A stretch of DNA of 64,000 nucleotides, taken from contig NIVC01001530.1 of assembly GCA_002269645.1 (NCBI GenBank), positions 186,001 through 250,000 of the forward strand, in the 5' to 3' direction. The position numbers were made by a program, and so were the translations under genes. The notes under the pieces are model-generated. The model saw nothing but the letters and a program-made list of their open reading frames with translations. It was not told the DNA's origin and did no database searches. This document shows, piece after piece, positions 16,660-43,407 of this stretch. The stretch is from Macrostomum lignano (taxonomy: Eukaryota). How positions within the stretch are numbered: the first letter of the stretch is position 1; each line of letters begins with the position of its first letter.

Positions 16660-16771
16660 GTCAGTTTTGGTTGTTTATTCTCGTTATGAATTTTAAGGGC
16701 TTTTTACGATAACGTTTCTTGGAAAAAACCCGCAGAAATTTTGCCGTTTTATCCACTAACCTGCATGTATA

Positions 16772-21459: not shown

Positions 21460-22897
21460 ATGGGATTCTTTGGGCAGTACGGCCGGCTGTTGCTAGTCCT
21501 CATCAAGTTGAAGAGCTGGCGCTTCCTATTCATGCTCATTGTCATCGCCGCTCTGTTCTCTAATATCTACCTATACGACATTGTCGACTCGTGGATGCAA
21601 CAAAGGGGCGAGAAAAACCTTGTGCAGGTGGGCCCGGCAGAGTTTGGAGACCGTAACATCATAGTAGGCTTCGTCCCGGAGAAGCTTCGTGAGTTGAATA
21701 AGCTGAAAGAGATGATTGAGAGAATGACGGGTTTCGACTTCTCATCCAGCATTGAGGGCTGCGACTCGGAGGAGATCTGCAATGAGATGTATTTTCGAAA
21801 CCTACTAGGCAGGAGAAGCGGCATGCTCAGCCATTTTGTTCATTTTGGAAAATACAGAGGCGGCGCATCTCATCTCATCTGCCAAATGTCTATCGGCTCG
21901 GAAATGCATTGCCCTTTTATGGCCTACTTAGTAAGAACTTCGCAAACCTTTTTCAACGGAACAGTCCACGAGTTTCATTCAACGTCAGTGTTTCGACTAA
22001 TGTCGAAAATCCAACTGTTCGATGAAATAGTCGGTGGGGAGATGACAATATGCAAGAAAGACGCCAATTTTCCTGTGGTGTTTCCCAAGACCATTATGGC
22101 TCAGGTAATATGCGTGTTAATCACACTAGTATTCTATCTGTTCGTCAGCACAATGACATGCATCTACGAGTTAAAGCAGCACGGATACCTGCAGATCCTA
22201 TTTCGCAAAGGCTTAGGCGTTTTAGCCTATTGGGCTGCTATTTGGACCATAACGCTGTTTGAAATGGCCTTGTTTGCTGGCGTGATAACAACAGCCTATC
22301 TGGTCCAGTGCATCAGCTTTTTCTCTTCAACGCAGCTGGTTGACACCTTTGTGGGAGCTCTTTTACAATTCTGCTTAGTGGCTGCAACAGTACTGCTATT
22401 CTCTATCGTCACTAAGCAGCTAGCCCTGTCCGGAGCTTATTGTTGCACTTACCTGATAATTGTGGTGGCTATTGTTCTGGCAAACAGAATGTATCTAGCA
22501 GAGGGTCCAATATTCGTGCGATATATTCTGCTAATAATGCCAGCAGGACATTTGGCTGAGCAACTTTTTACTGGCTTGACGAATATTTCAGACAACAAAG
22601 TTGACTCTTTGATGATGCATGTTAGCGGAGGATTTCTGGCCCTGACAATATTGTTTACAGTGTATTTTGACTTTGTGTTCAAAAGCGGCAACGGCTGGAG
22701 ATTGCCGTGTACTTTCTACTTCACTAGTGGATTTTGGTCCCGTCCAAAAAAGCAACCTCAAGAAGATGACAAGGAGGCTTCCGCAATGTTCGAAGCAGCC
22801 CAGAACTGGTGGAGGGTTCTGGTAGCGACCAAGGGAATAAAAAAATCGTTTGCTTCCTGCATGACAAAGAACGAGGATGCCTTGTCAAATTTTTCCA
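21460..22897 (+). CDS. ABCA-like transporter copy 1, exon 1 (TMD1)
   Basis: ATG at 21460; TM1, a Cys-containing extracellular domain and 5 further hydrophobic segments. Donor TCCA|gtaagt (phase 1). Confidence 0.88.
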
Positions 22898-23001
22898 GTA
22901 AGTTTTTCTACTAATTAAATTTTAGATTTTTTTATATTGCAAAAATTTTTAACAAATCCAAAGAGATACAAAATCTTAACACTCAAATTCTTTCATCCCA
23001 G

Positions 23002-26000
23002 CAAAATTCTACCAGGACCAGATAACAGCCGTCGTTGGGCACAACGGATCTGGAAAATCGATTCTGATGCAGATTCTCTCCGGTGAGCGTAACGCGACAG
23101 CCGGCCTAGCCACTGTTGACAAAGTGCCGATCACGGATTCACTGACTCGCTATCATATGTGCAGTTCCATTGGCTATTGTCCTCAACATGATGGTCTGGT
23201 TGACAGGCTGTCAGTATCTGACACGATCAAGCTTGCTGTTTTGAGTACAGGCAAAAGTTGGGACCGTGAAGAGAATAAGGTTCGGCACATTCTATCGTCG
23301 CTGGGCATTGAAAGCAAAATAGAAGAGTCAATACAGAACCTGTCATATAGCGAGAAGCGAAAAGTTTCTGTCACAATCGCACTCATAGGACAGCCCAGGG
23401 TGGTTCTGCTTGACGATCCGTCGAGAGACATGGACTACATTTCAAAACGACGGCTGTGGCAGCTGCTGCACGAGTTCAAAATCGGCCACTCTGTGATTGT
23501 CAGCACGCTGTTTATAAACGAAGCGGAAGCTGTCGCCGACAGAATTGTGTTCTTATCAGGCGGCAGAGTTCTCTGCGCCGGGTCGCCTTTTTTCTTTAAA
23601 CGCGCATTCGACTGCAGGTTTATCATCCAGATTGCCAGCAAGACTGAGTTTCATGTGCCTTACATCATTCGCAAAATAACGTCAAAATTTAATTCCGTGC
23701 GAGTGCGCAGCTTTTCAAACGCTGACGTCGAATTTGAAGTATCGGTAATGGACGACAGCATCCTATCCCCTGTTACTGCCGAGATAGAGAAGTTAGCTAA
23801 ACTAATCGACGAGTACGGAATTGTGCACCATTCGCTTGACGACGTTTTTTCAAAGTTGAAATCAATTCCGCCTAAAGAAGTCGATAGACACTTTGAGATG
23901 GGTACAATTGGCTACGTTGCTGACGATGTTGATCGGATTAAGGCACTGATGAAGAAAAAGCCTGTAGATCCACCAGACACTCCAGGTAAGGTGAAGCGCA
24001 TGCCGTCGCTTTTGCGAACTATCTTTGCGATGCTTGTGTCAAGCGTTCTCCAAACATTCCGCTCAAAAGTGAGGATTGTTACTCGCATTGCGATGCCATT
24101 ATTTCTCGTTGCACTAATCGCCCTGGGTGCATTTCTTGAGCGCGGTAAAAAGAACGACAATATTTCTCTGTGGGTCAATCTTAGCGATACGTCTCAAGTC
24201 GAAGAAAGTACTCGTAGAGGCATCTGCATGTATCCACTATCAGAAAACGTTGCAAATCATTTTGACGCGCTAAATAAAAAAGACTGCTCGTCAATGCTCA
24301 CTAGTGACGCGCTATCAGAAAATGTAGTGCCAATGGAACTGTTGATAGAAAAGTATCCTCGCGGCAATCTTCAAGCGGCTCTATTGGCTCCGAAAAATCT
24401 GAAAAAATCAAAAACCTGCAAGAATTCCAAAGTAGTGTGTCCAATAATATTTGGCAATGACTTCTGTCCAGATCGAAAGCCCATTCCTACGTACACAAAG
24501 AACCATACGATATCCGTTGGCGCATACATCCCGACGTCTAACTACACACCGACGTATTTCGTGGCGACTGCGATTAAGGTCTACGGTCACTTGTTGAACG
24601 TGATGATAAAGAAAATTTACAAAGACTCCTCGATGGATACCAAAATGTTGATAGTTGTTGAGGGAATTCAAGATATGAGAGGAACATTCTTTCAGTTTTA
24701 TGGCCTATTTGTACTAGTGACATTTATATCAGTGGTTCCGGTGATCTTCTTGGATGATGTCATGACAAAAAGAGCGGCGTGCGGCACCAACTAATGTCGA
24801 TGGGTTTACCACTTTGGAGCTACTGGTTCTGCAAAATAATAGCCCACTGGATTCCTCTGATTGCACTATACCTAATCAGTATTGTTCCTCTACTTGCGCT
24901 ACTATCATCCGGTTACGCCACTTCGCTTTTTCTGTTAGCCATCATGCCGCTAACTCTGGTATTCGGACTAGTCAACAGTCTCTTAGCTGCTTACTCTGTT
25001 AGCACGCTAGTAAAAGAAGTTAGATACGTGATAATAACTTTTTATGCACTTTTCTCACTGCTAGTCGCTTTGTCCGTTGTGCTAGTTCAGTCCAATGACT
25101 TGATGGGCGAATTGTTTATCTTCCTGTTTCCGCAGTTTGCAGCGATTGCACCGTCATTCTATGGCATGCGGTTCGCGTACTATAGCTTGTCCTACTTCTG
25201 GTCGATGGAGCAGTTGCCAGTGCCAAGCCTGCTCAACTTCTTTTTCAGCGTGCCGCATTTAAGAGACTCAATTATTGCACTGCCGGTTCACTTTATTCTA
25301 TTGGTTTTGCTACTCGTGCTACTCGAAAATAGGCACAGGTGCTGCAAGAAAGGTGAAGCCGTGACGGAACCCAGAGTCTACGAGCACTGCAGGGAAACGG
25401 CCATTCGAAAGGAAATAGAAAACGTAATTAACGTGCCAAAAAGCCAGCAACATCTGATGCAAGTCAGCGTGCTCAAAGCTATTAACGCTGATGGCGCCGT
25501 GGCGCTAAGAAATCTCACCTTCGGCTTGAAGTCTGGCGAAGTTTTCGGCTTGATTGGGCCATGCGGCAGCGGCAAGACGCCGGCTATGCGTGCCATTGCT
25601 GGAGATGAAAAGCAGAAATGCGCCGGAAATGTTGACATTCAGGTTAACGACAAGTGGTTGCCAAGCGTAACAGCAGCCCACCAGGGCTACATTGGCTACT
25701 GCCCGAGGACTGATCCACTTTATCACAGGTTGAGCGTTGGCGAAAATCTAAACTTCTACGCCAGGGTAATTGGTGTGTCGGCTGGCAGGGTGCAGCAGTT
25801 GGAGAAGGAGCTCTTCCAGGAGCAGGAATTAATCACGCGGGTCGAGCAAGCCAATGCGGGCTTGAAGAGGCGTCTCACTCTGGCAATTGCGCAGCTGGCC
25901 GACCCACCGCTGATGGCCATCGACGAAATTTCTTCCGGAATCGACCACGACGGTAGACAGTTGCTATGGAACAACATCAAGTCCATGGTTAGCAAAAGGC

Positions 26001-26118
26001 GAGGCATAGTGCTCGCGACGCAATGCGTAGAAGAGGCGGAGTTCCTTTGCGACCGGATGTGCATTATGAACCACGGGTTAATGATTGCTCTCAGCTCGGT
26101 GAACGACTTAATACTAAG
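23002..26118 (+). CDS. ABCA-like copy 1, exon 2 (NBD1-TMD2-NBD2), with an apparent -1 frameshift at 24767-24771
   Basis: FYQDQITAVVGHNGSGKS, GYCPQHD, CAGSPFFFK and GEVFGLIGPCGSGKT. Joins ORFs 23067-24794 and 24779-26122; donor CTAAG|gtaaat. Confidence 0.88.
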
Positions 26119-26365
26119 GTAAATGAAAAGCGACACTTTTTTCACACTTTGAAAGATATACCGGTAAACTTAGCAAGCAAAAATTGAGTACGACTTTGAA
26201 ATTTGAAAACAATCTTATCAACAAGTTCTTATGGGTTATGCTAATTTCTCTGACCGCCGAGGACGTCCTATTTTCATACAAAGTATTTCGGGTTTTGCAC
26301 TTTAAAGCTATTGCTGTGTTAAAAGTTTACAAAGCTCAGTGTCCCCCTCAACAACCCACCTGCAG

Positions 26366-26714
26366 GTACAAGACGATGTACTTCTTAGAGATGCAAATCG
26401 CCAGTAACACTAAGGAGACCCACGAAGCGCTGCAACGCCGCAAAGACCAGCTGGCCGCCATCGTGCTGGACAAATTTTACGGAGCAATCCTGATCGAGCA
26501 ATGGACCGCCAGAATGCAATTCGCTCTGCCGATTCAAAGTATTGGCTGTCTGTCAAACACCCTTGACTGGCTGTACTCCAGCAAGTGCAAGCTCAACATA
26601 CATTACTTTACGCTGCACTACGCCACCATCGACCAGGTCATGAAGGCTATTGTGGTGCACTCGGGGTATCAGATGATTAAGAGTCTGGAGAGTCAGACCG
26701 AGGTGTCTGTATAA
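26366..26714 (+). CDS. ABCA-like copy 1, exon 3 (C-terminal regulatory domain)
   Basis: Acceptor ctgcag|G TAC AAG (phase 2). YFTLHYATIDQV corresponds to ABCA YSVSQTTLEQVF. Exon lengths sum to 4905 nt if one base is restored. Confidence 0.85.
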
Positions 26715-28230
26715 AGTATCGCTGCTACTGCAGAAAGGTCACATTTTTATTTAAGACAAGACAAACAAAAGAATTTTGTTCATAACATTTTGGTTTGTGA
26801 AGGCAAATGCCGCCGCTGTGAATCGCTCGTACGCGCACACCCAATGAATATTAGTAGCCGCAATACGAAATACTGTATTCATTATCCCGATTTCAAGCGC
26901 TAAAGCCTAATTATTCACAAGCCTGACCAAATTGCACCTTTTAGAATGAGGATGCAATCCCATTTCAGTATCCGTGTATTTCCTTTTTTCTTTTATATCC
27001 AAATGTCTTGACTAATATTGCATCTAGAGAAATACAATGAATTGAATTCGCAAATATGCATTTGTAAATCACTTTGCCGACGCAAAATTTCGGCACAAGT
27101 AAAAACTCTGCAAGCATTTGATGGAACCGACATGTACTTTGTCATAAAATGCTTATGCTCGACAATGCAGCTAAAGACCAGCGTCGCAAAGAATATATTT
27201 CTGACTGTGAGATTTCTGTAGCTTGACAATTTTTTGCGACGATAAAGCTGCTTTTTTAGTCCAACTCAAAATAATCATACAACCCTACGCCTCAAACTAA
27301 ATTTTGTTAATTTTTGCGCCGATTTTAGCAAGCAAATAAGAAATATATTTAGCTACGGCTTGTAGTTAATATTTGAAAAAGGACTTCCTATTCGATACCA
27401 TTTTAGAATTTTTGTGAGCTAATAACAACTGACTGTGAGCAAGAAGTTGAATTAATATTCGGTAATAATCAAAACACTGCAAAATTTTACAAGCCAATTG
27501 AGCCAAGGGAAAATGAAACTATGGGAAATTGACTTCATTATCCGTGGCCCAAAAAGGGCTGTGGACCAAAAAAATCGAAAACCAATCTTTTCCACGGCTA
27601 TTTGCCTTTGCTTTGATTCGTTTCACTGAAATCAAAGTGTTATGTCAATTTTTTTTAACGTGCACTCTGCTTGCAGACGTTGTTTCAGCAAATACAATAA
27701 GGATTTACTATGAAAAGGATTAAAGAAAGATTCCTAGATCGGATCCTCCACTCCTCCTTTTCGACCATAGGCAATGGAAAGCAAGTCTTCAATGGTTTGA
27801 TCTTCCACTAAGATTTAAACTGCTATTGCTCCTTGGCTCGATCGGCTTGGTTTGGTTTATGGATGAATGGTTTTATTCATCCATGGTTTGGTCTCGTTTA
27901 AAATATGAAACGTATCTCTTCATCCGTGTAATTCAAGCACTCAGATATTGTTACAGTTTAACCATGGACACAGAAAATTAAATGCTCAAAATGCATGCCT
28001 TCTCCCTTAATAAATTTAATTAGTGTCTTTAAGTAGTGTCGTTTTAGTTCGCAATGCTATGTTAAGAAACTCTTTGTTTCTCTTCTCTCTGGTCTGCTAA
28101 GTCTGTCAGGAAGATTGTCTATGGCCAGAAAGACGCTTTGCTTTTTAGGTAGAAACTGAAAAATAGAGGAAATTGTGTCAGAAAAATATTGAGCATTGAG
28201 CAGAGATTACTTGAAATATTTCGTTGAGTC

Positions 28231-29698
28231 ATGACGATTGGACGGCAATACGTGCGCCTGTGCGTCGTTCTGTTGAAACTGAAAAGCTGGAAATTTCTTT
28301 TCATGTCTGTCGTGATAGCAGCTCTGGCGTCGAATGTTTTTCTATACCGATCAGCTCACTCGCTGATCGTTCGCCTGGGCGAGAAGAGTTTCCATGAGAT
28401 AGGCGCGAAAGAGTTTCAAAGAGACAGCTTGGTGCTTAGCGACACGAGTGCGTACGGAAGACAGATGGGGATCGTGTCGGATTATGTGTCCAAAACTGGC
28501 GCCGCTGGTAGCTTCGAACCAAACATTTGGGACTGCAAATCTGCTGAGCATTGCCAAGACGTATATTTGCAGCTGATTACTGGACGCGTTGCAGGCAAGA
28601 TAGCTCATTATGTCGACTATCAATCGGAAGTAGACAACCAGGCTAAACTATATTGTCAGCTGTCTATAGGAGAGGAACTCTACTGCCCGTATATGGCCTA
28701 CTTGGTCAGCATTTCTCAGGCGGAGAAGCAGGAAAAGAACTTTTTCTACAACGAAACCAACGTATTCAAGCTGCTAGATTCTATACCGTTTTATAAGAAA
28801 AATGTTTCCAGCGGACGGGACACAATCTGCGCGAGAGCATCGGACTTTATTGACACATTTCCCACGACTCTAATCATTCAGATGATTCTGATTATCATTA
28901 CCTTGATATTTTACATATTCGTGAGCACAGTTACTTGCATCTACGAGCTGAAAAAGAAAGGCTATCTGCAGTTGATGTTTCGCAAGGGTCTATCAGTAGT
29001 TGCTTACTGGACGGCTATCTGGACAATAACACTGCTAGAAATGATCGTATTTGCGGCCGTCCTATCCATGTCCCACTATTTCCAGTGCCCTGGATTCTAT
29101 CTTCACCCGAAGCTAACCCAACTGTTTGAACTGGCATTGGCTCACTTCTGTTGCGTCGCGTCCCTGGTTCTGATGCCCACAGTTCTGACACGCCGGGCTG
29201 ATGTGGCCGGAGTCTTTGTAAGCCTGCTGTGCTTGGTCATCGTGGCAATGATGGTAGTCAATAGATACGTTTTCAAATATAACAAAAGCTACGATATGTA
29301 CCGCTACGTGATGCTGGCTGTGCCAACCGGACACTTGACTGAACAGATATTGTCGGTTCTTCTCGGCGATTTCATGGAAAAGAGTAACGAATTTGTTTGG
29401 ATAGTCCTGCCAGTTAGCGCGGGAATGTCAATATTAGTGACAGCCATCACCATGTACCTGGACTGCGTACTCAAATCAGGAAACGGACTGCGGTTGTCGT
29501 TCTTGTACCCTTTTTGTCCGAAGTTCTGCTGCATATCAGATTCGAATTTAATAATTTTTTCTGAGCTGCCGGAAAATATGATGGTTGAGCCCGTGTCTTC
29601 GATTACCCGACCGAACGTGTGCGTCAGGGAGCTAAAGAAAATATTCTCGACCGGGTGTTGCCGGGGAAAGAAAACCCGAGCTTTGAATAATCTGTCAG
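28231..29698 (+). CDS. ABCA-like transporter copy 2, exon 1 (TMD1)
   Basis: Paralogous to copy 1 (LKLKSW, CQLSIGEELYCPYMAYLV, RKGLSVVAYW). Donor is GC-type: TCAG|gcaagt. Confidence 0.88.
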
Positions 29699-29789
29699 GC
29701 AAGTGATATATATACTGCGGTATCAGTCTCAGGAATAAGTTTAAAAGCTTGTTTAAACAAATAGCTTATTCCCGACTATTCAATTTCAG

Positions 29790-32700
29790 TTAACTTTTAT
29801 AGGAACCAGATAACAGCAATCATTGGGCACAACGGATCCGGCAAGTCGACTCTGATGCAGATTCTCTCTGGCGAGCGCGAAGCCACATCCGGCCTGGTAA
29901 CTGTCGACAGAGTCCCGGTTACGGATTCACTGGCTCGCTATCACATCTGCAGTTCCATTGGCTACTGTCCGCAATCTGATGCTCTAGTCGACGGGATGAC
30001 GGTTGCTGACACTGTCAAACTCGCAGTCATGAGCACGGGCCAAAGCTGGTCGATGGCTGAAATTCAGGTGCGTCACATTCTATCCACGCTGGGCATTGAG
30101 AGCAAGCTTAGCGAGCCGACTGAAAGTTTATCGGCGGGCGATAAGCGAAAAGTTTCAATCGCAATGGCTATAGTTGGCAGTCCAAGCGTCATTCTATTGG
30201 ACGATCCATCGAGAGGCATGGACTACATTTCGAAAAGAAGTTTGTGGCATCTCCTGCACGAGCTGAAGACCGACCGTTCAATAATAGTGAGTACCCAATT
30301 CATTAACGAAGCGGAGGCTGCAGCCGATAGAATGGTATTTTTAGCCTGCGGTAGAGTGATATGCGCTGGATCGGCGTTCTTTTTTAAGCGAGCATTCGAC
30401 TGCAGGTTTATTATCCAGATAGCCTGCAAAACCGAATACCACATACCGTTCTTCATTGAGACTCTCACAACCAAGTTTGAATGCACTCGAGTTCGCAGTC
30501 TGGGCAACACTGACTTGGAGCTCGAGGTTCCAATATCGGAGGACAAAATTCTGCCAGATTTAATTCGGGAAATTGAGAAGTTTCCAGGCTTAATAGACGA
30601 ATTCGGGATAGCCAACTATCGTCTGGATGATGTGTTCTGTCAATTTAAGAAATCTCGAAGCTGAGGATATTGAATACCACTTTCAGCAGGGCACCGTAGG
30701 CTATGTTGCTGAGGACAACGACAGAATCCGGGCGATAAAAAACAGAACCAGTTTCCCACTACCAGTCGGCAATGTGGCAGTAAAAAAGTCATCGTGCTCT
30801 TGGATTCGGACGATAGGAAAATTGATAGAAGTTCACATCAAACTAATATGTCGCAGTAAAGCTCGACTGTTTATGAGGCTAATTGTGCCGATTGCGTCAC
30901 TGCTATTAGTCGCTGGTGCCGTTGTGTTTGAGAAGTCTGAAGAAGTTGATAAAATTCAAATAAGCTACAATCTTAGCAACACAACTGCATTTGAACGGAA
31001 CAAAGGCATCTGCATGCACTTTTACTCGATATTTTTAACAGATGTCCATTGGGATGTCCTTAGTCAGGGTGAATGCGGCTACTTTATAACTGGTATGAAG
31101 AAGACCGATCGAGAAGTGAAAGGTCTAGTCCTTGATCCAGTGTTTTTTGGAAAGAGCTTAGCAGAACTGCTAGAAATTTATTTGCCTTACATCCGAAAAC
31201 AGTGCCAAAAAATGAGCGGGCCATGTCCGATTGCTTATTCAACTGATTGGTGCCCTGATACTGATGTGTCAAAAAGCCACAAAGTACACGTCGGAGCCTA
31301 CGTGAACAGCGATAATTACACTGCAGATAGCGTTGCTATGACAGCAATTGAAGTGTTTAGAAACATGATATCCCAAATCACGCTGCAAATTTTTGATGGC
31401 AAACATTCGGTTAAGCCGGAATTCGACACTGTAGGCTTCCTGAACGTCGAGGCAATATTTTTTAGGCTCTACAGCCTATTTGCTCAATCGGTATTGCTTG
31501 CAGTCCTGCCCATGATGTTTCTTAGCGACATACTCCAGGACATGAAATATGGTATTCGAGTTCAACTATTAACAATGGGTGTGTCTCGATTGAAGTACTG
31601 GTTTTGCAATATCGTCAGTCACTGGTTGCAGTTTGCCGTAATCTATTCGATCAGTATAACACTTCAAGTGTGCATCATAGCATCAGCGTACAATACAATG
31701 CACTATTTAGCCATTATTCTGCCGGTGACGCTGTTATTTGGTATAATGAACAATCTACTATGCGTCTACCTTTTGGCCATCGTGATGGGCCATGCTAGAT
31801 ATGTCGCCATTGCAACCTATGCCTTTGTCAGCTTGATGATATCTTTGTCCTTACTGTTCGTGCAATTTCACAATTTAGCTGGTCGAATATTAGTGTTTCT
31901 GTGTCCGCAGTTTGCAACAGCTGCGCTAGCGTTTTATGGCATCAGGTTTATGTACTACAGCGGTGCCTATTATGAAATTTTCGGAGATAGCAGACTACCA
32001 AGTCTGATGGACTTTATAGCATCGAGGCACGTAATGTATAGTCTAATGGCCATAGTGCTGCATTTTGTGCTGCTAGTGATAATAATGATACTAATTGACA
32101 AGCGACACAGGTTGTACGCTACGTGCAGACAGGGCGGAATCTACTCAGCTGCAACAAAAGCTTACGCCAGCACTCTGGAAGTCTCTATATTGAATGAACT
32201 GAACAGCCTCAATGAGAATCCGTTTGCATCGGAAAACATTCTGGAGGCCATGGACCTGCGAGTGGTCAAACCAGATCGCAGTGTCGTACTGAAGAATTTA
32301 TCTGTGGGAGTGAAATCTGGCGAAGTATTCGGCCTGGTTGGCCCGTGCGGCTCGGGCACGAATTCGGCAATCCGAGCAATTGTCGGAATCGAGACCAATG
32401 CCTGCGCTGGACAGGTTGACTTGCAGATCGATGACAAGTGGATTCCAAACGTTGTAGCAGCCAGGCGTGGTATCATCGGCTTTTGCCCCGCCTCAAATCC
32501 TCTCTACCAGAGACTGACCATTCACGAGAATCTGATATTTTACGCGCAAATTAACGGCGTACCAGCCGGCAGAGTGCGCCAACTGGTCCTAGAGTTCTCT
32601 CTGGCCTCAGAGCTGGGCACGATTGTTAAACGAGCCACAAAGGGTGTTAAACGACGACTTACTCTGGCAATTGCACTGTTAGCCGCTCCGGAATTTGTTG

Positions 32701-32902
32701 CGATTGAGAACCCCTCTGATGGAGTTGATCCATCTAGCAGACAAATAATGAGGCGTATCATTAGGTCGCAGGTGACCGAGCGGCGATCAATTTTCATTGC
32801 GAGTCACCAGATGGAAGAATGCGAGACTCTGTGCGACCGAATCTGCATTATGAACCATGGACTAATGGTGACTCTGAACAGAATTGAACAGCTCTTAGAC
32901 AG
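29790..32902 (+). CDS. ABCA-like copy 2, exon 2, with an apparent +1 frameshift at 30650-30652
   Basis: Acceptor tttcag|TT AAC TTT TAT AGG AAC CAG ATA gives VNFYRNQITAIIGHNGSGKST. Joins ORFs 29855-30664 and 30627-32906; donor GACAG|gtgagc. Confidence 0.88.
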
Positions 32903-33460
32903 GTGAGCCTGCTTGAAACTGATGCTTTAGTTTTTAAATAGCTAAGTTGGGTTGTAAAATTTTGGCTAGTAAAAAATTGTTTCAAAGGTTGGGGACAGAA
33001 AATAGTTGCGACAATGAGCTCAAGACACTATCTATTAGTCAAACTTGTAAGGATTAGGTTTTCAATACAACAGCTAGAATGCATTTGATGCAGAAATAGA
33101 TTGATTTTAATAAAAAAGACTAGCTATAGAGACCCCTGATGAGTGCGTTCTCTGGTATAATGTCTCCTATAAAGAGCTCATTAAATCAAATAGTTTTTAC
33201 ACCAAGTCTCTCATCTTAATCGAGGTAGTTCCGTTTGTAGAATTTTTTATAAGGATACATTAGAGACAAAAACATTTGTTTCAATTATTAATCTTTGGCA
33301 GTACTTTTCGATAATTAAATTTATTAAACACTTGATGGTTCGGTAGTATTTATCGTGCTACGAGTATGTCCCATTCACTTCAAGTCACCTTTCTCACCTC
33401 CTCCATTCTGATTTGTGACGTTGTCATATCCTATCATTGCAAGTCATTCACTCTCAGGTT

Positions 33461-33962
33461 TACTGAGGGAATTGCTGAGATGTCAAGGCTTACTGAGGGA
33501 ATTGCTGAGATGTCAAGGCTTACTGAGGGAATTGCTGAGATGTCAAGGCTTACTGAGGGAATTGCTGAGATGTCAAGGCTTACTGAGGGAATTGCTGAGA
33601 TGTCAAGGCTTACTGAGGGAATTGCTGAGATGTCAAGGCTTACTGAGGGAATTGCTGAGATGTCAAGGCTTACTGAGGGAATTGCTGAGATGTCAAGGCT
33701 TACGGGGGAATTGCTGAGATGTCAAGGCTTACTGAGGGAATTGCTGAGATGTCAAGGCTTACTGAGGGAATTGCTGAGATGTCAAGGCTTACGGGAGCAT
33801 TGCTGAGATGCCAAGGCTTACGTGAGAATTGCTGAGATGCCAAGGCTTACGGGAGAATTGCTGAGATCTCAAGGTTGGGAAGTCAGAAGCTACATGTATA
33901 GTTTATTTTTTAAAAATCATTCCATGCTTTGTTGCCTCCCCAACGGGGGTGCTGATTGCTAG
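33461..33962 (+). mobile_element. Helitron-like element 3' part with a 30-bp satellite (tactgagggaattgctgagatgtcaaggct, about 14 copies), ABCA copy 2 intron 2
   Basis: Array, then hairpin ccccaacggggg and CTAG|T at 33959-33962. Confidence 0.7.
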
Positions 33963-34006
33963 TCTTTCACAAATCCTTTATCCGCCCATGAAAATCGCTA
34001 ACGCAG

Positions 34007-34201
34007 ATACAAGCGCCTCTACCTGCTAGAAATGCAGCTGGATGATTCTAGAAACTCTGAGTCAGCCGGAGATGGGATGGAGTACAGGAAAGCGCACGCT
34101 GCCCGCCTCGTGTGCGATCGGTTTCCTGGCACCATCACCATCGAGTGGTTCACCTCGTTGCTGCAGTTTGCCGTGCCAATTATCAGTATGGACCGTCTGT
34201 C
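34007..34201 (+). CDS. ABCA-like copy 2, exon 3, 5' part (interrupted by hAT)
   Basis: Acceptor acgcag|A TAC AAG CGC CTC TAC; YKRLYLLEMQ aligns to YKTMYFLEMQ of copy 1. Confidence 0.85.
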
Positions 34202-34732
34202 CAGTGGTGTGATTGGAAAGTTTGCCAAATTTCGCGCCGACTGAAAATTTTCGCGCCATGCCAATAATATTCTACTGACAGCCAAATAAGTCAATTGATG
34301 ACACTTTTGAAGATGCGTCTGGCTACCAATTAGCATGTCTCTTAAGTCACAGCCGTGTCCCCCCTGAACTTCTTGTTGGCGATGTCTGCAGGCAGACGAC
34401 TGCTCGTGCTGGTGATTGACGACGTTGACAGCAGCTCAGCAGCCTTGCGCTTTAAGACGAGCTCAGCTAGCTTCTCTGCCTCCTTCTGTTTCTTCTTCTG
34501 CACATTCTGCTGCTGACGCCTGAGATTGAACTCAGTTTGTTAGATTAATATCCTAAGCTATGACATTCTTGTATTTCATACTGTCTGACAAGAGAATAAG
34601 TGTAAAAAGCAGAAAATAAGAATGCAATTTTCGCGCCCATGGTTCCACAAAATTTCGCGCCAGACCCCCAGGATTCGCGCATTCGCGCCATTTTCGCGCC
34701 TGGCGCGAATTTGCGCCTGAATCACACCACTG
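34202..34732. mobile_element. Non-autonomous hAT element, 531 bp, inserted in coding sequence
   Basis: Perfect 13-bp TIR CAGTGGTGTGATT/AATCACACCACTG and perfect 8-bp TSD CGTCTGTC (34194-34201, 34733-34740); subterminal TTCGCGCC motifs. Confidence 0.93.
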
Positions 34733-34740
34733 CGTCTGTC

Positions 34741-34960
34741 GGACGCACTTGACTGGCTAGTTCGACGCAAAAACCGTCTTGGTATTCGGTACTTCACGCT
34801 GCACTATGCCAGCATCGATCAGACAATGAAGGTCATCATAATTGCCAACGATACTGAAGACGTTACTGCGGAGACGCCGGTCAAGATGCACGTACCAACT
34901 GTGACTAATGACGAAATGAAATCGCAAAGAAGCTCTAGAGGATTTAGAATTTCGGTGTAG
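34741..34960 (+). CDS. ABCA-like copy 2, exon 3, 3' part (after the hAT insertion)
   Basis: DALDWLVRRKNRLGIRYFTLHYASIDQTMK aligns to TLDWLYSSKCKLNIHYFTLHYATIDQVMK of copy 1; in frame once the element and one TSD copy are removed. Confidence 0.85.
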
Positions 34961-35363: not shown

Positions 35364-35618
35364 TCAGAAACCGGCGTCGTCATTTGAGTTGGATGTGTCT
35401 TTGTTTACAGGATTTTTTCCCTCGCCAAGAACAATTTGAATGCTGTTGTGCACGAGTGGTCTTGCACCGATGAGCAACCTTGCATCGGTCAGGTGGGCCG
35501 GCATTGCACTTTTATCGTTCGGCCCGTGTACTTTCGCAAACCCCCTCCCAGTCGTCTGCCCTACCCCCAGCTGCACCGACCTTCCAATTCTTTCTACTAC
35601 AGTTACATGTACCTGCAC
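35364..35618 (-). other. Unassigned short ORF in a GC-richer island
   Basis: 84-codon ORF with no recognised homology and no good pyrimidine-rich acceptor. Confidence 0.15.
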
Positions 35619-36086
35619 CTTAACCTGTTTGACGCCCTCTCTGCTCTAATACCCTCTTTTTGTCTAGTACCCTGGTTTTGTGTTTTCCTAGCTGTTCTTA
35701 ATCATAACAGCCAAATATTACCTAATTAGCCCTACCGCAGGGTTTTTGAGTGCATGCATAAATAAAAAAGGTAGTTTTCATTGATCCAGGTCAAATTCAA
35801 TCAATGATTATGTAATTAAAAATGATTTCTCCTACTCGTATCTCCGTAGTGTATTTTTTCCCAGGAAATCGGCCTTCAAAAAAACGACACGATCTTTTAG
35901 TTTTACCTCCTGTTTTACTACTGTGGTCCTTGATGTAGCTCTAAGCAGCTGAGCGATAAATTACCAAAATGAATTTTCAATCGTATACTGCAAGCACAAG
36001 TTTAGTAATGGAAGAGACTGACTGACTGGTAGACTTTTTAGTATGCAGCAGAGTTGAACTATGGCCGTAATGCCGTTGTTCAACAA

Positions 36087-36495
36087 CAACAACAAAAGAC
36101 GTCGTCAGTCAGTCAGCAGACAACGTTACAGAGCGCGTTTCAAGGCCTGGGTGCGAATGTAGGCCGCGCCGCCGGCAGTGTCCGGGGCGCCGGAATCAGC
36201 CAGTGCAGCAGGCAGTCGACGAAACGCCGAGTGCGCGCCTGTCCGCCGCCGGTAGGGTGCCTGCGGCTTCAGCAGCAGCACCTCCTGCACCGGCTGCACT
36301 GACAAGGCAGTACGACTCTCGGATGATACGGCCTGCCAGCTGGAGTCGCCGACGGCGCAACAATTCGCTGGGACGGGACAGGCCGGTGCGGCGATAGAGT
36401 GCCGCATTGGTGACTCGCTCGTAGCCGATCTTGAATCCGTCAGCGTCCAGGTCTTGGCGTTGTACAACAGGACGCTCTCGATCACCGCCTGGAAC
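36087..36495 (-). mobile_element. 5'-truncated RTE-like retrotransposon 3' end with (TTG)n tail and 12-bp TSD
   Basis: FQAVIESVLLYNAKTWTLTDS and LYRRTGLSRPSELLRRRRLQLAG; TSD gttgttcaacaa at 36075-36086 and 36496-36507. Confidence 0.88.
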
Positions 36496-37222
36496 GTTGT
36501 TCAACAAAGCTGCATAACTAAAGTCTTTTCCCAGCACAGATGCCATTGTTCACACTTATTTCACGCCAATGCAATGATATGGAGGGTTGGACAGATACTA
36601 AAGGTGGAAATGTAATCACGTGGGGAACATAATGTAAAGTTACATTGGGGAGCAGCTGTGGAATAATGACCACAACTAGTTGCCATTGTCTTAGGGAAAT
36701 AATGAAATAGAATAAAAATTTTGTTTTTGGATAGCTACATCAAGATAAACTCTGAAAAATACTGTACCACATTTTTATCTGCCAGTTTTCATCGGTCCGA
36801 GAAAATTCTGAACCAACTGTAAATTGATTTGATCAATATTTGACCCGCGGAGCTACTGGCGGCACGGTAATGTGAACCGTGTTGAAACAAATTATAGCAG
36901 AACTAGAACAGTTTTACTTCAAGTATACAGAATTACAACGTTACTTTATCTGGATTATTTGTAGACTGCAACTTTACTGTCATTTTCTTGTATAGTCAAA
37001 ACAATAATTATTCTAATAAGTTGCTGGACTAAGATAGCTCTGAAAATTATGAAATTACGAGCCCGTACGTTGGACCAGTTACGGAGAATATACAAATAAT
37101 TTGTTGGAGTCGTATGCAGAATTACACACCAATTGGTTAAACAAACTACAGTCTCTGTGCATTTTTTTACTGCGAGTGGCGACTAAAAGTGAAATATTTA
37201 CTTTACGTTAAACATTTATAAG

Positions 37223-37595
37223 TTATACATCGTAAAACTCTGGCAGTTCAACCAGTGGCGAAGCCTCCAAGCCTCTTTCTGGCTGCTTTCTGAACTGCTT
37301 CTCGTGAGTCTCGAAAACGTACTCAAGCAGCTGGTCATCTGAGGCCGGATAGAACAGCAGGTCGGAGATGACGGTTGTGAGTTTGGACTTCAGCTGCAGC
37401 AGCCAGTTGATGGACTCGATTGCCGGTTCCACGCTCTGCTCGGGCAAAGCAATCTTCATCCAGGACACTGTCTGATCCAGGACGTTGGTTTCGTAGAATC
37501 GCGCCAAAATTCTACGAAGTATATCGACTTTAGTGTCCTCGTGCGTCGAGATGCCTTTGGCTGACAGCTCGATCTCCAGAATGTAGAGACTCAAA
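37223..37595 (-). CDS. ABCA-like copy 3, exon 3
   Basis: Acceptor attcag|T TTG AGT (phase 2). LYILEIEL...MKIALP...INWL resembles the last exons of copies 1 and 2. Confidence 0.75.
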
Positions 37596-37811
37596 CTGAA
37601 TTTGAAATCGGGTTACGGGTTTTGAAGTACATGTATTAAGCTAATCATTGGGAAATAACGGATAAAAAGATTAATTGAAAATGAAACAATCAATCAAGAG
37701 GTTGGGCGTCAACTGAAGCACGGGAGCGGAGCACCATAAAGGTCGGTATCATTTAATCAATGTCAGAGTTTGCAGACACGCACATCTTCCGCTTGCTTGG
37801 AAATCTGATAA

Positions 37812-38014
37812 AATGATGATAACAATAATAATAATAACGGATTACACCTGCCAAAAATCGCTGGCATCCATTTGACAGCTGTTTAAACTGAAGCAAAGTG
37901 TTGAGGAAGTTAAGTGTCTTCCTCAAATACACAAATTGTTCCAATGGGATCAGGAATCGAACTCACGACCTTAAAGTCGTGAGTCCGATGGTTTCACCAC
38001 AAGGCTTACAACCC
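37812..38014 (-). mobile_element. Diverged tRNA-headed CORE-type SINE copy, ABCA copy 3 intron 2
   Basis: Matches the other copies over head, CORE and (ATT)n tail. Confidence 0.75.
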
Positions 38015-38511
38015 TCTATGCTAACAACCCCTGATAAAAAAATTTAGGGAATACAGGCTTGATTTATTTTTGTTCAAGTAATCAGGTTGATAGATTTTTT
38101 TACTCGTATGCATTTTACTTGTGTGAATCTAATATCGCTAACCAACTAATAATGCTTTTATAAACCCGATTGTTTTTGCCAGTTCGTGAATTGGGGGTCT
38201 CCCACCAAACCGGAATTCGGCCTGAGGGACGGGTTTTAGCAGACTGTTAAAAATCTCGGGTAAACTGGTATCTCCTATAGTGTTTACCTGTCGTTAATAA
38301 AGTTTAACCTAGTCGACGAGAAACGCCGAGAAACCCAATGTACCGTACATACATGTACATGTACGTTCGGTTTGATCCATGCTTCGGGCGCTCTATTCTA
38401 GATCTTTTAGTTTCTTAAGTATTTCCCATTTTGAATTTAATTACCGCTACGTGGGTATAACTATAGACAAAACACTTCAGATAGAGATACAACCAAAATC
38501 TTTTTACGCAC

Positions 38512-41500
38512 CTTTCCCGGATATCACTCATTGTATCAACGCACATTAGCCCGCCCTGGTTAATCAGTCCAACCAACGATGGCGCCTGCGCTGCTACATT
38601 CAAATCGTGCGACGTTGTTATCAAGGTCATATTTTCCGTGCCGTTCTGTAAAATTGATCGCATGATGTTCATATCTTTAGGAGAGGTAACACCAGTAGAA
38701 ACATCATCAGCTATGAACAGGATAGTCTCGTTCTTCATCAGAGCAATCACTAAGCCCAATCGCCTTTTCTGACCAACCGACAGTTGACTAACAAGCTTGT
38801 TCTTGCATTGGACCAGGCGAAAATCTTCCAGCAGCTGGGCCAATCGTTCGAAAGACACGCCGAGCAAGTTAGAGTAGAACAGAGCATGTTCAACAACTGT
38901 GGCAAGTTTGAACAGAGGGCTGCGATGCGGCGAGTAGGCCACAGCCTGCTTGAATTTTACTGCTCGACCGGACACCCAGCGGCCCGAAGCGCCGCTACGA
39001 ACCCGACACTCGCCACTGCTTGGAGTCAGCCGACCGGCAATCGCCGACACCACGGTTGACAAACCGGATCCTGTTGACCCAACGAAAGTCAGCACTTTGC
39101 CTGATTTAACGTCCAAGTTTACATCGTGAACCGCGCAGATACTGGGACTAAAATATTTAGTCAGTTGCTGAACCTCCACTACAGAGTTCCCCTGCTGGCT
39201 GTTGAAGTTTCTAGGGTAGTCTGCATTCATAGTATTGTGATAACCACTGGTAGCATTCTGCATTATTGACACATTGTTTTTCGCATTAGCACCGGTACTT
39301 TTATAGCAAAGATTCTTTTTGATAAGTGGCATAAGCAAAATTACGGCTGTGAGTGTTGCGAAGTGGAGGGGAATAACTATTAGGCACGCAAGAATGTGCC
39401 GCTCCGTGTAGGCAGCCAATCTAAACCGCGAACTATCAGCGCCATCGTTAATAAAGTTGAAAAACTCTAATGAGTAACGATACACTTTGGTGCTATAGTA
39501 TGAAAGCATTCCTGTGGCAAAAGGTGGCAGAGCAACTATCATGGACAGGCTTAGCGGAAATACCGATGGCAAAATTATGGAAAAACTGCTTATCAGTATC
39601 GATACTATTAGATAGGCAGTTGGAAGTAGTCTTCTTAAAACACTCGGTATTATGAGACTGAGAAGATAGACCAGTAGTAGATTATTCATCAAACCGAAGG
39701 TGACTGTCAGAAAACACACCAGCCATTGATATTTAGAACCGTATACTACAGGATTAATGACCATTCGTACTATGATAGCTAGACAGTACACTGGAGCGTA
39801 TTGCAGCCAGAGCATGAGCAGCTGGCCAATGAAATATCTTGCTGGACTGACTCCCACAGAGACTAGAAATGAGGGCCACTTCACGGATCTTTGCTGTAGT
39901 AAATCATTAATATAGTAAGCTGGCAGAACGCAGACGATAAACAGCTGAGATGTCTGACCTAGCAGAGGCAGCGCCACGCTGCGATAGTCATTCACGATTA
40001 GAATGTGAAAGTTTGCGGTCGTTTTCACTGCTGGCATGAAATATTTCATAGCTGATAAAGACGCGATGAAGGCTGATGCGGTAGAGAAGTCCGGATGACT
40101 ATTGACCCGTAAGATCCGATAACCAGCTGCCGATCGTAATTCAAGCTAGTTCTGCTCCACGAGTTCGCGTACGCAACTGGGCAAGGCAGCTCGTTTTGTT
40201 TGACTGCAGTGCAATGCTTGTGAATTTGTTTTAATACAGCCGGCGTCTGAAGGTAACTGTACAGTTGCGTGTTCCACTGCTTTGGAATGACTATGTAGTT
40301 GTTCCCGGCGATGACAGATCCTGTAAGCAACATGCCGCACCTGTACTGATCAATCTTGTACTTTGACGGCACATCGTTGTCGTAAATGCAGACGCCTCTG
40401 GTGAATTTCTTAACTGGCAGATTGGAGATATTTCGCGAAACTTTAAGTTTCGTTAGCCATGCTTTCTCTATAAGGAGAGGCGCAGCGAAAAAGCCGAGTA
40501 AAAATATTGGCACAAAGATACACTGACAAAATATTCGACAGCAACTTCGGCGATGAAGCAGACAGCTGAAGCGACAAATTCCTCGGACAGCTCCGAAAAA
40601 AGTAGTTTCCGAGTTTTTGGGAATTCTTCTTCTTTGAGATAATTCGCTATCGAAATGATCGCCGCTGTTTTTAAACAGATCGTCTGCCTCGATGTTCTTG
40701 GAGTGGATGCCAGACGAACTTCTGTTTTGACGACCATTTAGAAATAGACTGTCAATCTTCCCAGTATTCACTCTTCTGAGCCGGTTGTACAGTTCAGTCA
40801 AAGTCAGTCGCTTCAGAGAAATCTTTTCAACGTCTTGTTCTATACTTTTGAAGGCTTTTATTACTTTCATCGTCAGGTTGTCATCGCTGCCTGTCAGGCG
40901 ACTATCGAAGTGCGCCGAAAGCAGCTCCTTCTCGAGTGTTAACTGAATTTGACCATTCAATACTGACGACAATTGGGAACGAAGTTTCTCAAGCGCGCTC
41001 TCGCCCCGGCTGGGATCTCGAAGGCGCGCCTGGACGATAAGCTCAAAGTTGGCGGCCAGCCGCATATACATGTACTGGGACGAGCCGGCGCTAGCGATAT
41101 TCTGACCACTCGGTGACGATAATAGTATCAAACGATTGGCCCGCCGTTCCATCTCGTTAATCTCATCGGGCGAATGAGCCGCTACGCCAACAACTATGCA
41201 ACGCTGTTGGATTCGGTGCTCCTCGAGCAGGCGCCACAGTCTCTGTCGCGATGCTGGGTCAAGGTGGCGAGTTGGCTCGAACAGCACAACCAATTTTGGA
41301 TTGCCTAGTAGTGCGCAGGCGATGCTGAGACTGCGGGCTTGACCGGTGCTTAAACTGGAAACCCGACGAGGTAGAATGTCAACGAGTCGCAGCAGAGCAA
41401 GAGTTGGGTGAATGTCCCGCTCGCACTTGATCCAACTCATGCCTCTGCTTACGAGCGCCATCTGGAGGGTGTGCAGGACTGTCAGGTTGTTGCACAGAGC

Positions 41501-41691
41501 ATCTTCCGCTGGGCACACGCTGACTCGGGTCTGCGATAACGGCCTGTTTCGGCTGTTGGCAGCTACTCTGCCGTCAATCCAGAGGCTGCCGCTCGTGACA
41601 GGCTGGGCACCTGTCATCACTCCTAGAAATTCGTTCACCTTGCTGGCGTCGTCGGCGATTACCGCCGTGATTTGATTGTCGTACAGGTCAA
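38512..41691 (-). CDS. ABCA-like copy 3, exon 2, with a frameshift at 40106-40108
   Basis: Acceptor ttcacag|TT GAC CTG gives VDLYDNQITAVI. Both NBD folds are recognisable (LSTGQ, VVLFEPT, LSVGQKRRL). Joins ORFs 40046-41737 and 38415-40049; donor GAAAG|gtgcgt. Confidence 0.82.
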
Positions 41692-41969
41692 CTGTGAAGA
41701 ATAAATAAAAAATTGCTGTGTAAAGTTTATTGAGCATGCTGGTGCATGGTAAGCGATAGAGATTATATAACGTAAGGTAATAATGTAGGATTGCTCAGGG
41801 AACTGTGACTTAGTGTGCAGAATTGCCTTAGCACGTACGAACTATCGACTGCAGTATACGAGCGTAGAATGATACCTAATGAACTGCGTCAAGAATTGCG
41901 CTACCAAATTGTGAGTTAGTTTGACACTTCTGAAGTTTCATGAATACAGGAACGGCAATAAAGACTTAC

Positions 41970-43407
41970 CAGAAAATTGTCCAGTCTGCGCTTCATTATG
42001 ATCGGCATCGTTCGTCAGCGGCTTGCAAGACACTTTAGCATATCTGACTATGATATCATTGTTCTCAAGAAACTCAATGCCAGGTTGCTGTTTGAACATG
42101 TCTGGCAGGTCGAAACCTGGCGCCGCCGTGCAGACCCGTAAAATAGGGGAATAACGCAGCGCATTGCCCGTGGTCAGAACGTAGTCCAGAAAGAGCGTCA
42201 GTAAGATATTTACAGCAGAAAACAATACATTAATTAGAACACCTGTCGCATGAAATTTATTCTCGATCTTAGGATTCACTTGGCCAACCAGATTGGCTTG
42301 CAGCTGTTCGGCAAAGTTGCCGCACGGCAACAGAAGCAGACCCATTTGTAGCTGCTTTAAGCCGACGAATTCCAGTGATTCTTGAGCCAGTCGGTTACTA
42401 ATTATGAGCACTCCAACTGCGATTACGTAGGTTATCGTACCCTTACAGATTGCGTAGTAGTTGTTAGTTAGAACAGTTAAAAGTAGCATGAATGACGCTG
42501 CGCAGTACAGGAAAGACCCTGTTTGCACTGCAATAAGGTACACGCGCTCCGGAGAGTAGAAACCGGGACACTGAATGTAGAACGACAGCGTCATGCAGAT
42601 AGATAGTAGAAGCACCTCTGCACTTGTCCAGAGCCACACAGAGGCCCAGTAAGACGCTGGCGATAGGCCCTTGCGAATCATCAGCTGCAGAAAGCCGCAG
42701 CTTTTGAGCTTCACGATGCAAGAAATTGTGGTTAATAAGAAGTAGAAGCAGAAAATTGTCATTACTAGGATTGACAGAAAGCAAAGTAGTTTAGGCAAAT
42801 AAAAGAAGTAGTTTCTATCTGCTTGACAAAAATTTTTAGACGTTGATTCCTCGCTAATATCGCTGGCATCCGAGGTCAGATGAAACATGCTGTAGTTCTG
42901 AAACCAGTCTGTAGCGTCTTCAGTGGCGCTGGAGTAGAAGAAAATGCTGCCAAAGAACGAGCAGTAAAGTTCGCTGGCGTAAGTAGCCGGACAAACAAGA
43001 GCTTTTCTGTCGTAATCAATAAAAAATTTCTGCCGCTTTTCATTGTTGTGCATCATGTTTGAATAAAGATTTGATACGCACGAGTCCCAATTCGCACACT
43101 TCCAATGGGCCTGATTCTCTTTCAGATTTGAATCCATGCTCTTCAGCATGCTCAGCGTAAAACTCAGCGTCGTAGAAGATAATTGATCCGTGTAAATTAT
43201 ACTTGGCTGAGCTTGACTAATCTTGTAACCGGTTATTCCCGTCAGCCTACCTTTGCCGCGCGCATGTAACCAACCGCTAATAAGCAAGTGGTTCCATTGG
43301 ATGCTAAACAGAGTTAGGAGCAGCAGTGGCAGAAACAGCACCAGATTCCAGGACTTCAGCGCTAGTTGAGTGCGTAAGAGAAACAGGGATTGGCTCACGG
43401 TGCCCAT
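41970..43407 (-). CDS. ABCA-like transporter copy 3, exon 1 (TMD1)
   Basis: LALKSW, ELYC and QLMIRKGLSPASYW are shared with the paralogs. Donor TCTG|gtaagt (phase 1); same length (1438 nt) as copy 1 exon 1. Confidence 0.85.

Follow-up and report, generated by a model that had tools for sequence, protein, structure and literature searches.

Asymmetric ATP-binding cassette (ABC) proteins such as CFTR, SUR1/2, TAP1/2, ABCG5/G8, Pdr5 and TM287/288 have one degenerate ATP site, with Asp for the Walker B Glu, an H-switch that lacks its His and a partner signature that departs from consensus, and one consensus site that hydrolyses. In CFTR and SUR, the role of the protein has shifted from transport to gating or regulation. 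To our knowledge, one ATP site still works in every well-studied asymmetric ABC protein, and we know of no eukaryotic full-length ABC transporter that works as an ATP-independent pseudo-transporter; a literature search for earlier cases in which both sites of an ABC transporter are dead yielded only papers on one-site asymmetry. Here, we describe three tandem ABCA-like genes in a 64,000-nucleotide stretch of the flatworm Macrostomum lignano (assembly Mlig_3_7, GCA_002269645.1, contig NIVC01001530.1, positions 186001–250000; hereafter the window), in which canonical residues are missing at both ATP sites and every assembled reading frame is disrupted, together with an intact duplicate of the cluster on contig NIVC01003058.1. 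Overall, we consider it likely that the two clusters are homeologous, that they belong to an ATPase-degenerate branch maintained by selection, and that the window copies were recently inactivated.

Among described families, the genes come closest to the ABCA5 group (vertebrate ABCA5/6/8/9/10-like), which likewise consists of full transporters of about 1620–1660 aa with short extracellular domains; our reference for this group is an ABCA8-like protein of Thomomys bottae (P0003). The extracellular segments of the M. lignano genes measure about 160 aa (between transmembrane helices TM1 and TM2) and about 185 aa (between TM7 and TM8), far shorter than those of ABCA1 or ABCA4. Both extracellular domains (ECDs) contain invariant Cys residues, nine in total (C101, C107, C141, C151, C198, C888, C908, C952 and C959), so that the shared Cys motifs reported in a preliminary description of this DNA are real.

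The three genes occupy positions 21460–26714 (plus strand, copy 1), 28231–34960 (plus strand, copy 2) and 43407–37223 (minus strand, copy 3). They were located by stop-free frames and Pfam scans, and the exon junctions were read base by base. Each copy carries two PF00005 (ABC_tran) domains and PF12698 (ABC2_membrane_3-type) membrane domains, with transmembrane domains (TMDs) and nucleotide-binding domains (NBDs) in the order TMD1-NBD1-TMD2-NBD2. Each also has three coding exons, separated by introns at homologous positions: intron 1 is in phase 1 and lies directly 5' of the NBD1 strand '...YxxQITA', and intron 2 is in phase 2 and lies directly 3' of NBD2. The coordinates, three-exon structure, domain layout and identical intron positions and phases of the preliminary description are thus all confirmed by Pfam and the junction reading. 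Its protein lengths (1634, 1664 and 1663 aa) were also reproduced exactly, but only once the lesions are repaired, and its long frames turned out not to be continuous: the frame of exon 2 switches once per copy (at about 24759–24771 in copy 1, 30650–30652 in copy 2 and 40106–40107 in copy 3), and a miniature inverted-repeat transposable element (MITE) splits exon 3 of copy 2. The features of the cluster are the following.

21460–22897, plus strand: copy 1 exon 1 (TM1, ECD1, TMD1), ending in phase 1; GT-AG intron at 22898–23001
23002–26118, plus strand: copy 1 exon 2 (NBD1, putative R1, TM7, ECD2, TMD2, NBD2), broken by a 4-nt deletion
24755–24771, plus strand: copy 1 lesion, GATGATG/TCATGAC in the window against GATGATGTCATTCATGAC in the duplicate, one TCAT unit gone
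26366–26714, plus strand: copy 1 exon 3 (putative R2 domain at the C-terminus, and stop), preceded by a phase-2 intron at 26119–26365
28231–29698, plus strand: copy 2 exon 1, ending in phase 1; GC-AG intron (gcaagt donor) at 29699–29789
29790–32902, plus strand: copy 2 exon 2 (NBD1 to NBD2), broken by a 1-nt insertion
30647–30655, plus strand: copy 2 lesion, AAGAAATCT in the window against AAGGATCT in the duplicate, G replaced by AA, a +1 frameshift
34007–34201, plus strand: copy 2 exon 3, part one, preceded by a phase-2 intron at 32903–34006
34202–34732, no strand assigned: hAT-like MITE in copy 2 exon 3, 531 bp, 13-bp terminal inverted repeats (TIRs) CAGTGGTGTGATT, 8-bp target-site duplication (TSD) CGTCTGTC
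34741–34960, plus strand: copy 2 exon 3, part two, including the original stop codon
41970–43407, minus strand: copy 3 exon 1, ending in phase 1; GT-AG intron at 41969–41692
38512–41691, minus strand: copy 3 exon 2 (NBD1 without P-loop, through NBD2), broken by a 1-nt deletion
40100–40112, minus strand: copy 3 lesion, TACGG-GTC in the window against TACGGCGTC in the duplicate, a C missing between 40107 and 40106
37223–37595, minus strand: copy 3 exon 3 (C-terminal domain and stop), preceded by a phase-2 intron at 38511–37596

In copy 1, a TCAT unit is missing from TCATTCAT, which shifts the frame into a stop at 24792–24794, and the annotated coding sequence (CDS) P0002 (BOX15_Mlig014614g1), whose start agrees with ours, terminates at this lesion. 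The frameshift of copy 2 leads to a stop at 30662–30664. In copy 3, where our start agrees with the annotated proteins P0023 and P0022, the missing base is the C of GGCG, and the annotated CDS P0023 enters the shifted frame there. The TSDs flanking the MITE lie at 34194–34201 and 34733–34740, and the homologous site on NIVC01003058.1 is empty; with its 8-bp TSD, short TIRs and no transposase open reading frame (ORF), the element has the features of a hAT-superfamily MITE. Further copies of it were found neither in the window nor in the compared loci L001–L003. Removal of the MITE as an intron was considered and rejected on inspection of the sequence, as no GT-AG pair permits its exact excision. 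GenBank CDSs on the window contig are shortened as well, to 1076 aa (Mlig014614g1), 837 aa (Mlig002413g1, copy 2, which ends within the MITE) and 1027 aa (Mlig010555g1). Because each copy is frame-disrupted, and copy 2 is also split by the MITE, full-length proteins would not be expected from the window locus.

On contig NIVC01003058.1, the gene order recurs at a nucleotide identity of about 98.5%, and the genes are intact there, encoding Mlig014614g2 (1636 aa), Mlig009431g1 (1664 aa) and Mlig010555g2 (1661 aa). The intact counterparts of copies 1 and 2 were recovered through genomic context, an exhaustive search with a hidden Markov model (HMM) and cluster look-ups; a word-indexed protein search had missed both. 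Pfam domains recorded for the duplicates are those of the window copies, the splice sites are kept between the two clusters, including the GC-AG donor of copy 2, and the ATP-site motifs are the same except for LSAGQ in Mlig010555g2 in place of LSTGQ in the window. The contigs differ by about 1.6% in non-coding and 0.5–0.8% in coding sequence, which fits the subgenome divergence published for the recently polyploid M. lignano (2.2% genome-wide and 1.1% in CDS; PMC10733133). Set against these intact homologues, all three window copies are frame-disrupted, as is expected of pseudogenes.

Besides the lesions, the clusters differ by in-frame changes of 6 nt at 41075 in NBD1 of copy 3 (SSQYMYMRL against SSQYMRL) and of 3 nt at 24409 in ECD2 of copy 1. 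Exon 1 of copy 3 (484 codons) is identical on both contigs and 36 codons differ in the remainder of the gene, which suggests gene conversion or a mosaic assembly.

To read the motifs of the ATP sites, the copies were aligned with canonical ABCAs and with six further M. lignano paralogues; every degenerate motif string of the preliminary description was found. In NBD1, Walker B reads LLDDP in copies 1 and 2 and VLFEP in copy 3, the H-switch reads STL in copy 1 and STQ in copy 2, and the signatures are LSYSE, LSAGD and LSTGQ in copies 1, 2 and 3, respectively. In NBD2, Walker A reads GSGKT, GSGTN and GSGLS, and the signatures are ANAGL, ATKGV and LSVGQ, in the same order. In copy 1, site 1 places the NBD1 elements GHNGSGKS, LLDDP and STL opposite the NBD2 signature ANAGL, while site 2 places the NBD2 elements GPCGSGKT and AIDEIS, a Q-loop Arg (CPRT) and the H-switch ATQ opposite LSYSE. 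This copy keeps both P-loops and has lost the catalytic Glu of NBD1, the Q-loop Gln of NBD2, the His of both H-switches and both signatures. Copy 2 keeps only the NBD1 P-loop, intact as GHNGSGKS and accompanied by LLDDP and STQ; its NBD2 combines GSGTN with Walker B AIENP and a Q-loop Ala. Copy 3 has ADDASKVN in place of the NBD1 P-loop, with VLFEP and a Q-loop Ala, and its NBD2 combines GSGLS, which provides no Walker A Lys, with ADDV and a Q-loop His; the signatures of both its NBDs are close to consensus.

A complete composite site (Walker A Lys, Walker B Asp-Glu, Q-loop Gln, H-switch His and a partner LSGGQ) is present in none of the three copies. The closest is site 2 of copy 1, with the Lys and the Asp-Glu pair present, and the Q-loop, H-switch and partner signature lost. 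The pattern of the CFTR, SUR and TAP type, one degenerate and one consensus site, is therefore not matched by any copy: copies 2 and 3 have no consensus site and copy 1 has a partial one only. The claim of the preliminary description that both sites are degenerate thus holds in that canonical residues are missing at both sites in all copies, although 'dead' is less certain for copy 1. No catalytic residue is missing from all three copies, and where one is lost the replacement differs by copy; such patchwork loss would fit a relaxed constraint on catalysis followed by independent decay.

Two of the degeneracies listed in the preliminary description are not distinctive. All six of the further M. 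lignano paralogues likewise have a Gln in the NBD1 H-switch (STQ or CTQ), as does, with STQ in place of the His, the mammalian ABCA8-like protein, which shares a non-consensus NBD2 signature with three of the six; the other three keep LSGGN. Since these features are found in the paralogues and in the ABCA8-like protein, the weakened site 1 is probably ancestral to the ABCA5/8-like lineage. On the other hand, site 2 is still consensus in the ABCA8-like protein and in the six paralogues, where NBD2 has the Walker A Lys, the Walker B Asp-Glu, the Q-loop Gln and the H-switch His, with the NBD1 signature LSGGQ (LSNGM or LSAGQ in two paralogues), several residues of which copies 1–3 have lost. As canonical Walker A and B motifs, the NBD2 Q-loop and the NBD2 H-switch are all kept in the six paralogues, the remaining losses are specific to the three-copy branch.

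The domain order, the nearest relatives in sequence and fold and the Cys-bearing extracellular domains place the three copies in the ABCA subfamily. The best database matches are ABCA8-like, ABCA3, ABCA1-like and ABCA5 sequences, and the best matches in the PDB are ABCA3, ABCA4, ABCA1 and ABCA7. For copy 3, the annotated fragment (residues 1–1027) was modelled with AlphaFold from a 31-sequence alignment, and the model served only to assign the fold of TMD1 and NBD1; its mean predicted local distance difference test score (pLDDT) is 54, with values of 70–90 for TMD1 and NBD1 and a poor prediction of the extracellular domains. Foldseek ranks 1–21 for this model are all ABCA4, ABCA7, ABCA3 or ABCA1 structures, aligned over about 600 columns. 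In the region after NBD1, this low-confidence model shows beta-alpha elements at residues 696–786. The segments following the NBDs align with the R regions of ABCAs (e.g., YKTMYFLEMQI with KDYLLEMKV), but the ABCA-specific Pfam families PF23321 and PF26955, which other ABCAs have in their entries, are absent from those of the M. lignano proteins.

A profile of the N-terminal two-thirds of the proteins was searched exhaustively against 1.84 billion representative proteins. Matches spanning TMD1 through ECD2 came from M. lignano only, at more than 500 bits. The best match from outside Macrostomum was an Anopheles ABCA3-like protein (488 bits, restricted to the NBD region in four stretches), most others remained below 400 bits, and generic ABCAs reached at most about 490 bits. 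In a neighbour-joining tree, the M. lignano proteins form one clade that joins the ABCA8-like protein of T. bottae, the best sequence match from outside Macrostomum, and not the ABCA1/3-like sequences. Overall identity to this protein is only 17–22%. Copies 1 and 2 pair in this tree, whereas copy 3 has the longest branch and its placement relative to copies 1–2 and the canonical paralogues is not settled by it. The six canonical paralogues (Mlig009542, Mlig032278, Mlig015942, A0A1I8HI41, A0A1I8HGU5 and A0A1I8GAF8) belong to the same species-specific family, also scoring above 500 bits over TMD1 to ECD2, and share the Cys pattern of the extracellular domains and two intron positions with copies 1–3, to which they are 24–33% identical. 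The coding sequence of Mlig009542 is spread over 19 kb in at least nine exons (Mlig009542g3 on NIVC01000991.1; L004, 10001–28992), compared to three exons over 5–7 kb in copies 1–3; both introns of these copies have counterparts in it, after residues 502 and 1536. The joint loss of at least six introns by the three copies points to a single origin of the degenerate branch. The genes probably belong to a species-specific expansion of short ABCA5/8-like transporters, within which they would form an intron-poor and fast-evolving branch.

Selection on the genes was assessed by the ratio of non-synonymous to synonymous substitution rates (dN/dS), a check that the preliminary description had proposed. 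The comparison of each window copy with its intact homeologue gave 16 synonymous and 7 non-synonymous differences for copy 1 (dN/dS 0.127), 20 and 17 for copy 2 (0.24), and 25 and 11 for copy 3 (0.117). Each comparison alone rejects neutrality, as do the pooled 61 synonymous and 35 non-synonymous differences (p = 3e-17). The ratio of about 0.17–0.30 between copies 1 and 2 is affected by saturated dS, as dS is saturated among all paralogues, whose pairwise identities are 43%, 24% and 26% in pairwise alignment and 45%, 23% and 24% in the family alignment. The values against the duplicates (0.12–0.24), and that of at most 0.3 between copies 1 and 2, are thus far below the value near 1 that is expected of pseudogenes. 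The inference of selection made in the preliminary description therefore stands for the intact homeologues, which show purifying selection, but the window copies themselves are broken.

The low dN/dS implies that any inactivation of the window copies is very recent; relative to the duplication, at a dS of about 0.015–0.02, the lesions would also be very recent. The motif loss would be much older than the lesions, because the intact duplicates share the motifs at a dN/dS of 0.12–0.24. NBD1 is the domain in which copies 1 and 2 agree best (69% identity), and it is plausibly still used in both, for ATP binding. The NBDs of copy 3 are conserved no better than its membrane domains.

The first question is whether the lesions are genuine. 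One alternative is that the frameshifts are assembly or polishing errors, that the window genes are intact, expressed and ATPase-degenerate, and that only the MITE in copy 2 is real. We regard this as unlikely, and the locus as very probably disrupted; for copy 2, owing to the MITE, disruption is near certain. In favour of this alternative, Mlig_3_7 was assembled with Canu from PacBio continuous long reads and polished with Pilon, no in-frame stop accompanies the single frameshift of each gene, the window copies differ from the duplicates at a low dN/dS, and the derived amino-acid changes show no bias to the window side. Besides, indel errors do occur at contig ends of Mlig_3_7, because NIVC01004244.1, a redundant contig end, carries four 1-nt indels in its last 600 nt. 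The cluster, however, is more than 40 kb away from the contig end, and all four lesions are on the window contig with none on the duplicate. A reading of the frame changes as miscounts in homopolymer runs (A5, A3 and G3) was dropped on comparison with the duplicate: copy 1 has lost a 4-nt unit, copy 2 has AA in place of G, and copy 3 has lost a C, and neither of the first two is a simple miscount of that kind. A 4-nt deletion and a MITE with a TSD are not typical consensus errors, and copy 2 is interrupted by the MITE, with its clean TSD, regardless of any frameshift. Gene models from the earlier ML2 assembly agree with the lesions. The model P0220 (A0A1I8G5B0), which has the two-residue insertion of the window and is otherwise mostly of the duplicate type, jumps precisely at the copy 3 site ('...LVIGSYG/TGANAK...'), and P0001, mostly of the copy 1 window type, skips the region containing the copy 1 lesion, whereas ML2 models of the duplicate type continue without a break.

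The ML2 models P0220, P0219 (A0A1I8JHV2) and P0001 are fused or mosaic, with an F-box protein joined to copy 3 and a CHAT-annotated model joined to copy 3 among the fusions, and P0220 mixes residues of the window and duplicate types with one unique residue; it may represent a collapsed consensus or a third haplotype. NIVC01004244.1 itself, sought as a third homeologue via the neighbouring F-box gene, was rejected as such: at its end (L006, 14600–15359), the single-nucleotide polymorphism states are those of the duplicate haplotype, of which it is a redundant and error-rich end.

A second alternative, that the whole branch consists of decaying pseudogenes whose degenerate motifs reflect neutral decay, could draw on the disruption of all three window copies and on the fast evolution of copy 3, whose NBDs are conserved no better than its membrane domains, but it is already contradicted by the data and we consider it extremely improbable. 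The duplicate contig has intact frames of 1636, 1664 and 1661 codons. With a stop expected from about 4% of random point mutations in the genes, frames of more than 1600 codons could not survive such divergence neutrally; yet paralogues that differ at 55–76% of their residues contain no stop. Coding sequence also shows about five times fewer indels per kb between the two contigs than non-coding sequence does, the splice sites are conserved, and the dN/dS values given above point in the same direction. Frameshifts and a transposon are also what unitary or duplicated pseudogenes carry, the human ABCA11P and ABCA17P being examples of decayed ABCA genes; the window copies would differ from these two in their single, very recent lesions, a dN/dS far below 1 and intact homeologues that look functional. 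It is also conceivable that the proteins remain ATP-driven transporters through non-canonical catalytic residues, mainly in copy 1, where the Lys and Asp-Glu of site 2 (GPCGSGKT and AIDEIS) persist. Copies 1 and 2 have an intact GHNGSGKS in NBD1, the strong conservation of that domain argues for its continued use, and ATP binding persists at the degenerate sites of CFTR, TAP and MRP1. Nevertheless, we judge this possibility to be quite remote, since copy 3 is without both the NBD1 P-loop and the NBD2 Walker A Lys, NBD2 of copy 2 lacks the Walker A Lys, the Walker B Asp-Glu and the Q-loop Gln while its NBD1 catalytic Glu is changed to Asp, and site 2 of copy 1 lacks the Q-loop Gln and H-switch His and faces the non-consensus LSYSE. 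Moreover, the lost residues differ by copy, as expected under relaxed catalytic constraint.

Several observations nonetheless weigh against our preferred explanation of a recently inactivated, ATPase-degenerate homeologue. ML2 and Mlig_3_7 were built from the same PacBio reads and are hence not fully independent, and the 1-nt lesions could be residual PacBio assembly errors. Polarised with paralogue outgroups, 13 amino-acid changes are window-derived (four of them artefacts of lesion repair, which introduces one or two false residues per lesion), 11 are duplicate-derived and 14 cannot be assigned; without an excess on the window lineage, either the inactivation is very recent or the copies are not inactive. 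Transcription is supported by the GenBank annotation, which draws on RNA-seq and transcriptome assemblies (PMC5730564), but this evidence is indirect, as reads map to both copies at 98.5% identity. We infer the loss of hydrolysis from the motifs only, and copy 1, which keeps the Walker A Lys in both NBDs and the Walker B Asp-Glu in NBD2, may retain a slow ATPase activity. Finally, no orthologues outside M. lignano were found in the exhaustive HMM search of 1.84 billion proteins.

Considering this evidence, the window locus is most likely a recently inactivated homeologue of the cluster, and the branch apparently represents non-hydrolysing ABCA5/8-like proteins under selection. In the scheme that we propose, the window would represent one homeologue of a tandem cluster of three genes in M. 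lignano, a recent polyploid, and its genes would be very young pseudogenes or null alleles, an early gene loss after whole-genome duplication. The proteins of the branch would function, or would have done so until very recently, without an ATP-hydrolysis cycle, most likely by offering the ABCA membrane and extracellular-domain scaffold for the binding of lipids or other ligands or for handling lipids passively. ATP bound at NBD1 of copies 1 and 2 would be at most a structural or regulatory ligand, and copy 3 would be nucleotide-independent. Applied to the intact proteins Mlig014614g2, Mlig009431g1 and Mlig010555g2, this leads to the tentative proposal, possible although we would not call it probable, that neither site hydrolyses ATP, that Mlig010555 probably binds none, and that all three are selected ATP-independent 'pseudo-transporters' that bind lipids or ligands, transfer lipids passively or serve as scaffolds. 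The roles as sensor, channel regulator or receptor proposed earlier are speculation. Searches of the literature and supplements for the gene identifiers and for work on Macrostomum ABCAs found nothing.

The cluster is flanked by a DAO-domain gene (FAD-dependent oxidoreductase, 343 aa, 16210–17991, plus strand) and, on the opposite side, by the F-box gene Mlig014693g1 (599 aa, about 47850–44110, minus strand). Both are annotated as intact on the window contig, unlike the three ABCA-like genes between them. The window has a GC content of about 43% and abundant tandem repeats. Two 30-bp minisatellites, at 33456–33874 and 45203–45698, have the common core GAGATGTCAAGGC; the former lies in intron 2 of copy 2 and has 14 units in the window and 12 in the duplicate, and the latter lies within the span of the F-box gene and forms one open frame (STIQQVGLDI repeated 16 times) outside the annotated protein. 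An 18-mer satellite (TATCTGGGGGATGCTTGC) is found at 19070–19915, 57258–57705 and 59663–60182, a 28-mer array at 4951–6143, and arrays of 23-mers and 46-mers fill the last 9 kb (54746–64000). The multi-frame 'ORFs' and strong GC and AT skews in these regions are explained by the satellite arrays. Intron 2 of copy 3 contains a motif resembling a tRNA B-box (GGTCGTGAGTTCGATTCCTGA) at 37950–38030 (minus strand). ARAGORN and Rfam found no RNA gene in this stretch, which might be a tRNA-derived short interspersed nuclear element.

As the assembled window genes are truncated, the main interest lies with the intact copies on NIVC01003058.1. If our reading is true, these would constitute a natural experiment on what the ABCA membrane and extracellular scaffold does without an ATPase cycle, and would show how a transporter becomes a pseudoenzyme. 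M. lignano is amenable to transgenesis and RNA interference, which makes the function testable. With one cluster intact and its partner freshly broken, the pair would also cleanly capture gene loss at an early stage after whole-genome duplication.

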